Below are positions 28,103-30,830 of a stretch of DNA of 63,749 bases, piece after piece. How positions within the stretch are numbered: the stretch's first letter is position 1; every line of letters starts with the position of its first letter. Source of the stretch: Octopus bimaculoides (lineage: Eukaryota); the NCBI RefSeq assembly GCF_001194135.2, contig NC_068983.1, positions 154,582,549-154,646,297 on the forward strand. The letters run 5' to 3'. The notes below the pieces were generated by a model. The model was not told where the DNA came from. It ran no database searches and saw only the letters and a list, made by a program, of their open reading frames with translations. The position numbers were made by a program, and so were the translations under genes.

Positions 28103-28208
28103 CATTAATTCATTATGATTTCAAGACTTCTTGCCAATAGAAAAAAAGACCCGGTTTCTAAACTAGGTCCAAGGCTCTTTCATCGGAATTTCAACATCAG
28201 CAACAGGG
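28103..28208 (-). mobile_element. (CATA)n-associated R4-like family, 3' terminus only
   Basis: ~105-bp terminal unit between (TG)n/(TATG)n tracts; homologous to 28290-28392. Confidence 0.8.
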
Positions 28209-28289
28209 TATGCATGTATGTATGTATGTATGTATGTATGTATGTATGTACGTATGTATGTACGCATGCATGTATGTATGTATGTATGT

Positions 28290-28722
28290 CATTATTCAGT
28301 TTAATTCAAAATTTCTTGCCAATGGAGAAAAGAACCGGTTTCTAACCTAGATCCTGGGCTCTTGCATTGTAATTTCAACATCAACAATAGGGTATTTTTG
28401 CTTGTTTGTTTGTATGCATGTATGTATGTACGTATATATGTATATGTGTGCGTGTATGTATATGTGTGTGTGTGTGTGTGTGTGTGTGTGTGTGTGTGTG
28501 TGTGTGTGTGTGTGTGTGTGTGTGTGTGTGTGTGTGTGTGTTTGTGTGTGTGTGTGTGTGTGCGTGTGTGTGTGTGTGTGTGTGTGTGCAGATTTGCATG
28601 TTTTATGTATGTATTCTCATGCATATAGTTGCATATCGAAACATGCTGATATATAGTTAAATGATAAACTTCTGGAAAGTTTTACAGATTTTTACAGTTC
28701 CAGTGATGGATTGGATCTGTAG
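28290..28722 (-). mobile_element. (CATA)n-associated R4-like family: ORF end plus complete 3' UTR
   Basis: 28722-28657 encodes LQIQSITGTVKICKTFQKFII* (RLE C-terminus). The 3' UTR contains an internal (CA)n/(CATA)n tract and the terminal unit, which is followed by (CATA)n. Confidence 0.85.
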
Positions 28723-28787
28723 ATACAGATACATACAAATATGTAGATATGTATGTATGTATGTATGCATGTATGTATGTATGTATG

Positions 28788-29350
28788 TCATTGTTCAGTT
28801 TTATTTCAAGATTTTGTGCCAATAGAGGAAGAGCCGGTTTCTAACCTAGATCCAAGGCTCCTTCCCTGGAATTTCATACATGCATACATATATATATATA
28901 CATGCGTATATATACATATATATATATATATACATATATACATATATATGCATGTATATATACATATATACATATATACATGTATGCATAATACATAGAT
29001 ACATGCATGCATACATACACACATACATACATACATACATGCATACATACATACATACATACATACATACATACATACATGTATATATGGTATGTTTTAT
29101 GCATGATTTTCATGCATATACTCGTATATCTGGATATGCTCTTATATATTTAAATGATAAACTTCTAGGAAGTTTTACAGATTTTTACAGTTCCAGTAAT
29201 GGTTTGGATCTGTAGTCTTTGAATCAGCCTAATTTCTCAAGATTGGTATTTAGTCAGTGTATTACATATTCCAGTGCCTTCATAATTACAGGTATAAACT
29301 TGAACTTGTAATCTGGAGAGAGTAACTGCAGATTTCCCAGTAGTTCAGCC
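28788..29350 (-). mobile_element. (CATA)n-associated R4-like family, longer 5'-truncated copy
   Basis: AELLGNLQLLSPDYKFKFIPVIMKALEYVIH*LNTNLEKLG / LIQRLQIQTITGTVKICKTS*KFII*, then the 3' UTR and terminal unit ending at 28788. Confidence 0.85.
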
Positions 29351-29586
29351 TGGGAACATGTATATATATGCATGTATGCATGTATGAATGCTTGCACTTA
29401 TGCATGAATGTATATATGCACACGTGTATGAATGCATGCACGTATTTATGCACGTATGTATGCACGCATGTATGTGTGTATTTATGTATATATGTCTGTA
29501 AGAATACATGCGTGCCTGCACGTATGCGTATACGTACATATGTAACTATGTACGTGCGGATGTATGTATGCATATATGTATGTATG

Positions 29587-30676
29587 TCATTATTCATTTT
29601 TATTTCAAGATTGTTTGCCAATAGAGAAAGAGCCGGTTTCTAGTCTAGATCCAAGGTTACTGTTCCACTCACAGATTACACTTGTAATGTACCAATTAGC
29701 CGGTCGATTTCTCTTTGTAAAAATCCCAGTTTATCCAGATTATCCTTTAAGCATTTAAGAACAAAACTTAGTGCCACAATTATTGTTGGTTTGAATATGA
29801 ATTTATAGTCTGGATGTAGATGCTGGAGGTTTCAAAGCAATTGTCCATATATATCCTCTTTTTCTTTGATTTTCAAAGATATATTTATATCTGCAGGGCA
29901 GCTGACTTCTGTGATGGTACATACGTTTGCCCCTCTGTCCCAAGCAACAATATCTGCCCTGTTATGTTTAGATTAGACAGAAATTTTAGTGGGAATATTC
30001 CACCATTATTCTTTGAGTTGCTGTTTATGAATGTATTCCATAACAGAGGGGTTTTCTAAGTTTATTTCAGGACAGTCTTTTTGCGGATGGCATTGTGAAT
30101 TGTTTTAACAACAACATCGTGCCGCATAGGGAGGTAAACAGAAGCATGAGCCTACACATGCGGTTGCGCCTTCGGATTACAAGAGTGTCATTGTCTCTCT
30201 TGTTCACCAGATATTTTTTGGTAGTCTCCTGTTCCTGGATTGCAAACGCATAGCCTTCAAAGTGTGGTGTAGTGGTCTTGTGTCCAAGAGAGACTGCGCT
30301 TCGTGTCGATTCTACTGTCTTCTTCAAGCTTCCAGGTAACATACCCATGCATAGTCATTTTTTTTTATGCTGAGCACATTCTATCCATTTTGGGGCTGTA
30401 TCAGAAATACAGTGCTTTTTGGGGATCGCACTGCCAACTCGTACAATGTTGCTCACTTCACTTTTCAGCACTGCATTTATATATATATTCTTGCTGCTGT
30501 TGTTTAGCAGATGCTGCCTGAGTGATACAATATGGCATTAAAATGACGTCTGCACTGATCTCAGGCTTCTACCACCTTCATTTCTTCTTAGGTACAGCCT
30601 GTCAACATCACTGTTTCTGTGGAAGTTGCAAGTTGCTGTCAGGATTTTGCAGATGGCATTGTAAATTGTTTTAGCG
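29587..30676 (-). mobile_element. R4/Dong-like ORF C-terminal kilobase (post-RT region, zinc knuckle, RLE) joined to the (CATA)n-family terminus
   Basis: Near-continuous frame: KILTATCNFHRNSDVDRLYLRRNEGGRSL...HFEGYAFAIQEQETTKKYL...MCRL...KTIHNAIRKKDCPE...WWNIP...KHNRADIVAWD...CTITEVSCPADINISLKIKEKEDIYG...SVSGTV. This carries the PD-(D/E)xK-type RLE motifs of the R4 clade. Several stops. Confidence 0.9.
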
Positions 30677-30830
30677 ATGTATGCATGCATGTATGTATGT
30701 ATGTATGTATGTATGTATGTATGTATGTATGTATGTGTGCATATGTACCGATTCGTATGTCTTGTTTTTGGTATATATTCTTATGCATATAGTTGCATGT
30801 CTAGACATGCTCATATATACTTAAATGATA
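30677..30830 (-). mobile_element. (CATA)n-associated R4-like family: stop codon, proximal 3' UTR and internal microsatellite
   Basis: Reverse complement ATCATTTAAGTATATATGAGCATGTCTAGACATGCAACTATATGCATAAG matches 28615-28665, then (CATA)n. Confidence 0.7.

Follow-up and report, generated by a model that had tools for sequence, protein, structure and literature searches.

Stacked copies of a Dong/R4-like retrotransposon in Octopus bimaculoides and their probable homing to an (ATAC)n tail repeat

Why do several 3′ ends of what looks like one retrotransposon family lie one behind another, each close to a tetranucleotide repeat? The question is raised by a 63,749-nucleotide stretch of Octopus bimaculoides DNA (NCBI RefSeq assembly GCF_001194135.2, contig NC_068983.1, positions 154,582,549 to 154,646,297 of the forward strand), here called the window. 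Between positions 28031 and 30830 of this window, pieces of an open reading frame (ORF) and of a 3′ untranslated region (UTR) are interleaved with (ATAC)n-type tracts; all recognizable pieces lie on the minus strand, and element sense runs from 30830 down to 28031. The best explanation of this arrangement is at least four old minus-strand insertions of one family, placed head-to-tail, with a fifth copy on the plus strand 2 kb away (Table 1). Taken as a whole, the locus is likely a stack of copies of a Dong/R4-like long interspersed nuclear element (LINE) with a restriction-like endonuclease (RLE), homing to the (ATAC)n repeat that forms its own tail.

The encoded protein and the end of its reading frame

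The element is an RLE-type LINE of the R2 group, with a reverse transcriptase (RT), a CCHC motif and a C-terminal PD-(D/E)XK nuclease; both the domain features and the homologues agree with the first-pass annotation, made from the letters of the window, in assigning it to this type. The stitched minus-strand ORF at 30640-29657 contains the RT C-terminal motif RLYLRRNEGGRSL, CCHC remnants (CRxC...H...C) followed by YLPMRHDVVVKTIHNAI, and the nuclease core NRADIV...ITEVSCPAD...K. It matches four database proteins, P0001-P0004, with E values of 1.8e-47 to 7e-34, and two homologues, P0016 and P0050, were used as tblastn queries against the ORF of copy 2 (29657-30675). A second search, with P0001 as the query, returned 220 relatives, the longer of which, P0050 included, carry the Pfam domain RVT_1. 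Residues 136-888 of P0050 align with residues 418-1156 of the solved R2 protein 9nl3_A, from RT through RLE (E 1.9e-28). The window itself holds neither the RT core nor the element's 5′ end, and Pfam, which has no model for the nuclease region, returned nothing useful on the stitched ORF. Relative loci from other genome assemblies (L001 and L003-L009) extend the comparison toward the N-terminus, which the 5′-truncated window copy lacks: Pfam found no Exo_endo_phos domain in the N-terminal ORFs of L005, L007, L008 and L009 or in P0050 and P0081. A 29-bp similarity between 30645-30673 and 30079-30107 was considered as a trace of rearrangement and rejected; it is better read as chance, because 30640-30675 continues in frame as RT region (KILTATCNFHRNSDVDRLYL versus KLLCLSGNFHPNSDVDRLYL in P0001).

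A second block supplies the end of the frame. By self-BLAST it recurs at 28598-28722, 29092-29215 (86% identical) and 30777-30830 (77-81%), and it translates as ...LQIQSITGTVKICKTFQKFII up to a stop codon. Homologues terminate in ...RKLQVTSIGGTVKICKTFLNFSIK, ...IMQVQSISGTVKNCKTFQRFNF and ...RKLQTISVSGTVKI[VM]KTF.GFKM, following the pattern ...S[IV]SGTVKI.KTF..F.., which matches the block; it is therefore a genuine ORF end. The first-pass annotation had also joined the block to the RLE in one continuous frame, and this part does not hold for the window, where the fragment at 29657-30675 is cut after ...SVSGTV, does not reach the block and is joined directly to a 70-nt piece of 3′ end. The intact element would carry a single ORF (RT, CCHC and PD-(D/E)XK nuclease) ending ...GTVKICKTFQKFII before the stop codon.

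The join at 29656/29657 was examined with 150-nt reads from a DNA run of the same organism, aligned to short repeat-free pieces. Depth falls from ~550 on the ORF side to 0-3 across the junction, and 941 reads go upstream at 29656 as canonical 3′ unit instead. By read depth the junction is unique to this locus, and its interpretation as a subfamily mark was rejected; most likely, this one insertion underwent an internal deletion or a template switch.

The terminal unit and the likely layout of the 3′ UTR

The recurring 3′ piece, here called the terminal unit, spans ~70-114 bp and was recovered by self-BLAST of 28000-31000 against the window in all five places first annotated, four on the minus strand and one on the plus strand. 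Identity is 77-85% among the copies and 86-93% between each copy and a read-derived genomic consensus, the latter with E values of 1e-17 to 2e-33, far beyond chance. Read in element sense, four of the five end ...AA(A/C)(C/A)TGAA(T/C)A(A/C)TGAC and pass directly into (ATAC)n. The unit had been described as always doing so; the copy at 28103 departs from this, ending ...AATGAATTAATGAC and continuing into (CA)n mixed with ACGT/ACAT.

The reads show that these copies belong to a large family. Depth is 0-4 on the unique flanks and ~1,350-2,400 on the terminal unit (~1,350 at the core of the complete unit, 28290-28402). It is ~1,400 on UTRprox, our name for the ~85 nt of proximal 3′ UTR after the stop codon, and 1,300-1,600 on the ORF end of 29092-29340; the ORF type of 29657-29700 reaches ~550. 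Counting copies at ≥85% identity, the copy number of the family is on the order of 1,000-2,500. The first-pass annotation had named poly(A) or unique sequence at most 3′ ends as an observation that would speak against it; in the reads, the unit ends ...CTGAATAATGAC(ATAC)n and the tail is mostly (ATAC)n. The start of the unit, AAAAATACCC or ATACCC, has (ATAC)n directly upstream, and UTRprox continues in the consensus as ...CAAATCTGTACATATG... into ACAT-type sequence. Many reads carry the palindrome AGGTTCGTCCATCGATCGATGGACGAACCT, which resembles a bridge linker used in proximity-ligation libraries; chimeras are therefore to be expected among the reads, and consensus sequences at loose ends need caution.

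Relatives place the unit in its context. Directly downstream of the ORF, L001 and L003-L008 have a contiguous 3′ UTR of 145-235 nt, or longer, with a matching hairpin. These 3′ UTRs end in the manner of ...AATGAAAC before a tetranucleotide tail, individual ends being ...TTGAAATAAATATTAATGAAC, ...ATATGAAAC and ...AATGAAAAC, with the repeat directly after. The hairpin module is 30 nt long, lies ~50 nt before the 3′ end in identical register in every relative examined, and is built of a 5-bp stem, a UU bulge, a 6-bp stem and a 5-nt loop. Its alignment comprises 11 sequences, with the register picked by eye, positions fixed relative to the 3′ end and no gaps needed; 90.9% of the cells pair, and 10 of the 11 pairs are changed on both sides. 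The covariation score is 0.744 versus 0.307 after shuffling, none of 500 shuffles reaching the observed score, and slid controls give ≤0.16. The R2 protein recognizes a structured 3′ UTR, and target-primed reverse transcription depends on that structure. Because of this analogy with R2, the hairpin module is presumably the part bound by the element protein. With hairpin and end motif both present in the contiguous 3′ UTRs of relatives, the terminal unit is, as judged by sequence comparison, the 3′ end of the LINE, which upholds the first-pass annotation.

The most likely layout is a 3′ UTR in three parts, namely ~70-90 nt of proximal sequence, an expansion-prone ACAT/CA-type tract, and a ~110-nt terminal module with a bulged hairpin ~50 nt from the end. 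A single element in the order ORF, UTRprox, tract and unit would then account for the pieces, which we regard as likely, and the ACAT-type tract is probably internal to the 3′ UTR. The pattern of head (a 5′-truncated ORF end plus UTRprox), tract and unit occurs twice, at 29340-28788 and at 28722-28290, and the four heads and four units of the stack agree with whole 3′ ends that were nested or chained. The conserved hairpin is absent from UTRprox alone, which is therefore unlikely as a complete 3′ end. On the plus strand, moreover, 26039-26198 leads from a motif resembling the end of UTRprox (CAAATACTGCACATATG; consensus CAAATCTGTACATATG) to the unit across ~15-45 nt, a short-spacer arrangement common to a small group of genomic copies, with ~8-10 reads bridging into the unit. 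The segment 26030-26069 is not a plain microsatellite; it is a low-copy repeat with a depth of ~20, a consensus of its own and the UTRprox-end-like motif.

Several observations weigh against an internal tract. None of the 3′ UTRs of L001 and L003-L008 contains an internal microsatellite, and the three candidate tracts of the window differ from each other (ACAT, CA and inverted ACAT/TA). Compared with the minus-strand elements and all other tracts of the stack, the tract at 28875-29088 has the opposite polarity, perhaps because it was inverted, is foreign or was mis-assembled, and the first ~25 nt are missing from the unit that follows (28874). Units outnumber UTRprox ~1.5-2 to 1, and the 150-nt reads are too short to link UTRprox to the unit across a tract. 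With the exception of read length and the differences among the tracts, the same points favor two elements, in which the LINE ends at UTRprox with an ACAT/CA tail of its own and the ~110-bp unit is a separate short non-autonomous element that carries an ancestral LINE tail and homes to the identical repeat. The solo units at 28103 and 26085, and the fairly fixed 5′ boundary of the unit beside (ATAC)n, would suit this division as well. However, the LINE would then lack a hairpin that is kept, with compensatory changes, in the 3′ UTRs of all relatives examined, and the unit shows no detectable head of the RNA polymerase III (pol III) type, with no Rfam match and no tRNA-like part. Heads and units alternate in balanced number, the plus-strand copy connects the unit with a UTRprox-end-like motif over a short spacer, and 5′ truncation, or annealing within an internal tract, would lead one to expect more units than UTRprox. 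Two separate elements are thus unlikely. Rfam over the whole window returned no family at gathering score. The unit was also considered as a short interspersed nuclear element (SINE) and rejected, since it has no pol III-type head (tRNA, 5S or 7SL) and is contiguous with the LINE 3′ UTR in relatives. The single LINE with a tripartite 3′ UTR is therefore the reading followed here. Of the original proposal that an internal tract splits two blocks of one LINE, the assignment of both blocks to the 3′ region of one family stands, and the internal position of the tract is reduced to probable, with relatives that lack such a tract and one tract inverted.

Probable homing to the tail repeat and growth of the stack

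The flanks of the copies bear on where the element inserts. In the window, the repeat directly adjoins the four 5′ truncation points 30675, 29340, 28874 and 28722, in one orientation, and at the truncation point 29690, 10 reads show (ATAC)n. Relatives carry repeats on both sides. The 5′-truncated L003 has (ACTT)21 upstream and (ACTT)5 downstream, and the 5′-truncated L004 has (ATAC)~50 upstream and (ATAC)2.5 downstream, each followed by unique DNA. Among apparently full-length copies, L005 (~3.9 kb) lies between two (ATAC)n tracts, L006 between (ACTT)26 and (CTTA)29, and L008 between (TTAC)16 and (ACTT)7; the ORF-bearing L009 has ACTT/ACTC repeats upstream and downstream. L006, from a different sample, shows after (CTTA)n the same 5′ terminus as L008, AACTGCCGAGGAGGAAGGAGCTCGCTCCG.... 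By locus, tails and flanks are (ATAC)n in the window, L004, L005 and L007, and (ACTT)n in L003, L006 and L008. Because the repeat lies on both sides of relatives in which no upstream element could supply it, the proposal that the lineage homes to the tetranucleotide repeat forming its own tail is well supported by these sequences. The (CATA)n specificity suggested by the first-pass annotation is in keeping with the truncation points of the window, and insertion into the tail repeat with L003-L006, L008 and L009, each bordered on both sides by its own tail repeat.

Two copies count against homing. L007 has (ATAC)n only at its 3′ end, with none within 1.5 kb upstream of the ORF, and on the 5′ side of copy 1, the uppermost of the stack, no clear repeat is seen (AAACATAAATATAT only). 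Both would be expected if the element had no target preference, (ATAC)n being a tail made by RT slippage and the stack a chance cluster or the result of later microsatellite growth beside the copies; simple-repeat tails without targeting are known from CR1, RTE, I and other LINEs (PMC3812793, PMC2887409). Such an account is very improbable, given 80-200 bp of perfect repeat upstream of L003 and L004, beyond any element tail, the two-sided flanks of L009 and of the apparently full-length L005, L006 and L008, and four different window truncation points that abut the repeat in one orientation.

Homing to the tail repeat would use target-primed reverse transcription, with (ATAC)n.(GTAT)n microsatellites of the ACAY type as targets and a single orientation of insertion. 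From the observed anatomy, copy number, tail, flanks and hairpin covariation, we infer that the nuclease nicks the GTAT strand and that the element RNA, which ends ...AAUGAC(AUAC)n, pairs through its (AUAC)n tail with the nicked strand, so priming the synthesis of cDNA, with the hairpin as a presumed protein-binding part and the tract placed inside the 3′ UTR. Truncation at the 5′ side is frequent, the 5′ end being resolved within the repeat. The clade label, the nick site and the tail pairing are putative, which tempers the scheme as a whole.

Each insertion would bring fresh (ATAC)n that can be hit again, and stacks would result. The stack is best read as repeated independent old insertions (7-14% diverged) into the tracts of earlier copies and not as local duplication, because the units are star-like, each closer to the consensus than to one another, and the truncation points differ. 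Later copies may have entered either an internal tract (true nesting) or the tails (a serial chain). The feed-forward, self-nested stack proposed at first therefore keeps its insertions into tracts supplied by earlier copies; its nesting may instead be a serial chain. A head-to-tail chain resembling the window stack occurs at 7908-9900 of L006.

The gap-rich assembly also counts against the stack as drawn, as the order of the pieces rests on the assembly alone. The 19 N-gaps of the window, modules that repeat in identical order and one inverted tract might all be taken as signs of a local artefact, in which one insertion was multiplied by unequal crossing-over between microsatellites or the scaffold was mis-assembled. 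Nevertheless, the mutual divergence of the units fits independent decay from the consensus, the truncation points vary among the modules, each piece has a few reads at ≥99% identity, as expected for a real locus of about single copy, and chains such as that of L006 exist in relatives. A local artefact is scarcely credible on this evidence.

Independent insertions thus remain the preferred origin of the stack, the parts of which are listed in Table 1. Reads connect several of them to the wider family. At 30830, where copy 1 is truncated, 587 reads extend upstream into ORF (...AACTTCTGGAAAGTTTTACAGATTTTTACA), and 258 reads carry on upstream of 29336, in copy 3, as ORF. Tandem Repeats Finder reports the upper (ATAC)n tract at 30677-30736, with 15 units and 96% matches, and the degenerate positions of the 29345-29586 tract are perfect GTAT in the reads.

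Table 1. Parts of the minus-strand stack, in element sense, and of the plus-strand copy (positions in the window)
Positions	Strand	Feature	Identity to consensus
30742-30830	minus	Copy 1 (head 1), 5′-truncated: last two codons, stop codon and UTRprox	
30677-30741	minus	(ATAC)n, downstream of copy 1 and directly upstream of copy 2 truncation point	
29657-30675	minus	Copy 2, 5′-truncated, frameshifted ORF fragment: RT C-terminal region, CCHC, PD-(D/E)XK	
29587-29656	minus	Terminal unit, 70 nt, partial hairpin 29630-29656; joined to copy 2	93%
29345-29586	minus	Degenerate (ATAC)/(GCAT)-type tail tract	
29092-29340	minus	Copy 3 (head), 5′-truncated ORF end ...VIG.LG...LQIQTITGTVKICKTS-stop-KFII-stop, and UTRprox	
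28875-29091		ACAT/TA-rich tract between copy 3 and next unit; ACAT-type on plus strand	
28788-28874	minus	Terminal unit, 87 nt, without first ~25 nt; hairpin 28831-28860	93%
28723-28787	minus	(ATAC)n: tail of 87-nt unit and 5′ flank of next copy	
28598-28722	minus	Copy 4 (head): last 21 codons (LQIQSITGTVKICKTFQKFII-stop) and UTRprox ending ...AAAACATGCAAATCTG	
28403-28597	minus	(CA)72, then ACAT-type tract, from UTRprox to next unit; candidate internal tract	
28290-28402	minus	Complete terminal unit, 113 nt (CAAGCAAAAATACCC...AATAATGAC), hairpin 28332-28361	89%
28208-28289	minus	(ATAC)n tail, ~20 units	
28103-28207	minus	Terminal unit, 105 nt, hairpin 28148-28177	
28031-28102	minus	(CA)n/ACAY-type tract at stack bottom, then unique DNA	
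25988-26264	plus	Separate copy, overall	
25988-26038	plus	(ATAC)n 5′ flank	
26039-26084	plus	UTRprox-end-like segment and short spacer	
26085-26198	plus	Terminal unit, degenerate hairpin 26123-26153	
26199-26264	plus	(ACAT)n tail	

Other parts of the window are also rich in repeats. Its composition is eukaryotic, with 37% G+C and many SINE-like and simple repeats. A composite SINE-like repeat at 26950-27365 has (TTC)n(TTA)n on its flanks, with a long (TTG)n tract close by at 27433-27528; its first ~100 nt and last ~200 nt each recur often in the window at 69-94% identity, and the composite is also found near 13829, 42063, 45617, 55873, 62675 and 40085-40650, among other places. ARAGORN called no tRNA on this composite. 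At ~46690-46830, on the minus strand and adjoining an N-gap, the fragment ...SPDLAPTDFHLFRSLPNAM... resembles the C-terminus of a mariner/Tc1-type transposase. A long tetranucleotide-type array at 2914-4095, (ACTC/AGTG)-like and translating as (SLTH)n, recalls the L009 relative family, which is flanked by ACTC/ACTT repeats.

Relation to known elements and significance

The family "works like Dong", probably within the R4 clade, with a different target; this placement is based on protein layout and repeat flanks. Relatives have a single ORF of ~1,150-1,200 residues, with N-terminal ORFs of 365-476 aa that overlap or abut the RT-RLE ORFs, an organization compatible with R4/Dong. The N-termini of four relatives show no C2H2 or CCHC zinc-finger pattern, and the N-terminus carries a conserved W/Y-rich block, FxWxYELNEDLY...WDEIHPE. 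In R4/Dong, the N-terminus has no zinc fingers and a divergent Myb/SANT-like domain (PMC7998251); neither Pfam nor a PDB sequence profile search assigned a Myb identity to the N-terminus of the relatives. A self-cleaving ribozyme resembling that of hepatitis delta virus (HDV) at the 5′ end is a feature of the R4/Dong clade (PMC3774820). An Rfam E-value scan of L005-L009 found no HDV-like ribozyme, and Rfam models may miss divergent ones. Sub-threshold matches to Rfam mir-297 (L005 3501-3764 and 7700-7772, L007 7414-7486) were rejected as microRNA genes and are (GTAT)n artefacts.

Dong elements of Bombyx mori, Anopheles, Biomphalaria and Darwinula are the closest parallel. They are single-ORF LINEs with RT, CCHC and RLE, lack N-terminal zinc fingers, and home to a microsatellite that equals their own 3′ tail (PMC3812793, PMC7998251). 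However, the target and tail of Dong are (TAA)n, while those of the window family are (ATAC)n and those of its sister families (ACTT)n, and the window family has a probable internal tract in its 3′ UTR. Assignment to the Dong family proper was rejected, as target and tail are not (TAA)n. Waldo and Mino, of the R1 clade, share the target class, (ACAY)n for Waldo and (AC)n for Mino (PMC3812793), and the window tracts mix ACAT with CA. Nevertheless, these two elements use an N-terminal apurinic-like endonuclease, in contrast to the C-terminal restriction-like one of the window family, and the shared target is therefore convergent; identity with Waldo was rejected, since target class is all that is shared. 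Most RLE clades are target-specific, with Togen directed to (TG)n and some HERO families to microsatellites (PMC4640811). Togen, a NeSL-related element of fish, and these HERO families resemble the window family as RLE LINEs specific for microsatellites, but they belong to other clades and use another repeat, and NeSL-type elements have N-terminal zinc fingers, of which none were found in the relatives. R2 and R4 elements of ribosomal DNA (rDNA) have the same protein layout, with P0050 aligning to R2 structures from RT through RLE. For R2, the dependence of target-primed reverse transcription on a structured 3′ UTR is established; for the window family it is suggested by the conserved hairpin. 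In contrast, their target is 28S rDNA and not a microsatellite, and the N-terminus of the window lineage is short and without zinc fingers.

In light of these systems, the novelty first claimed for the family was overstated, for elements of the Dong type are known to home to microsatellites and Waldo already targets (ACAY)n (PMC3812793). Stacking is itself expected of any element whose tail is its own target. What is new is the target repeat and not the kind of element, and the family possibly already sits unremarked in repeat libraries. Dong-R4 LINEs have been reported to be abundant and recently active in octopus genomes (PMC13282606, PMC8967140, PMC9115989), and the O. bimaculoides repeat library includes a 'Dong' with an intact ORF (PMC9115989); these three papers do not mention the target of octopus Dong-R4 elements. 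The literature searched, which did not extend to Repbase or Dfam, describes no (ACAT)n-specific R4/Dong family.

The relatives also indicate that targets can change quickly. Over the final 245 residues, which take in CCHC and nuclease, the (ACTT)n family of L003 shares 85-86% identity with the (ATAC)n family of L004 and L007, and the two have almost collinear 3′ UTRs. The other families show 34-58% identity over the same residues and group partly by repeat type. The closeness of L003 to L004 and L007 therefore points to a recent switch of repeat with little change in the nuclease region. Either an N-terminal region sets the target or the RNA tail guides the choice. It is possible, though rather improbable, that target choice is largely set by pairing of the RNA tail with the nicked repeat rather than by the protein. 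If this were true, an element could be retargeted simply by gaining a new tail, families this close in the nuclease region and near-identical in their 3′ UTRs that home to different tetranucleotides would be explained, and, with internal repeat copies in the 3′ UTR, every insertion would offer two landing sites.

Known microsatellite targets of RLE LINEs are (TAA)n and (TG)n, and this lineage adds (ATAC)n and (ACTT)n. A recent target switch combined with a conserved 3′ hairpin offers a compact system for asking what sets the target of R2-type elements, which are under development as gene-insertion tools (PMC13586686, PMC13580325). Furthermore, a split-read survey reported little recent 'Dong' activity in octopus (PMC9115989); short reads are ill suited to mapping elements whose insertions fall in their own tail repeat, and such surveys may miss these elements. 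With at least ~1,000 copies and one or two tracts in each, the family could supply the genome with a sizeable number of its ACAT-type microsatellites.

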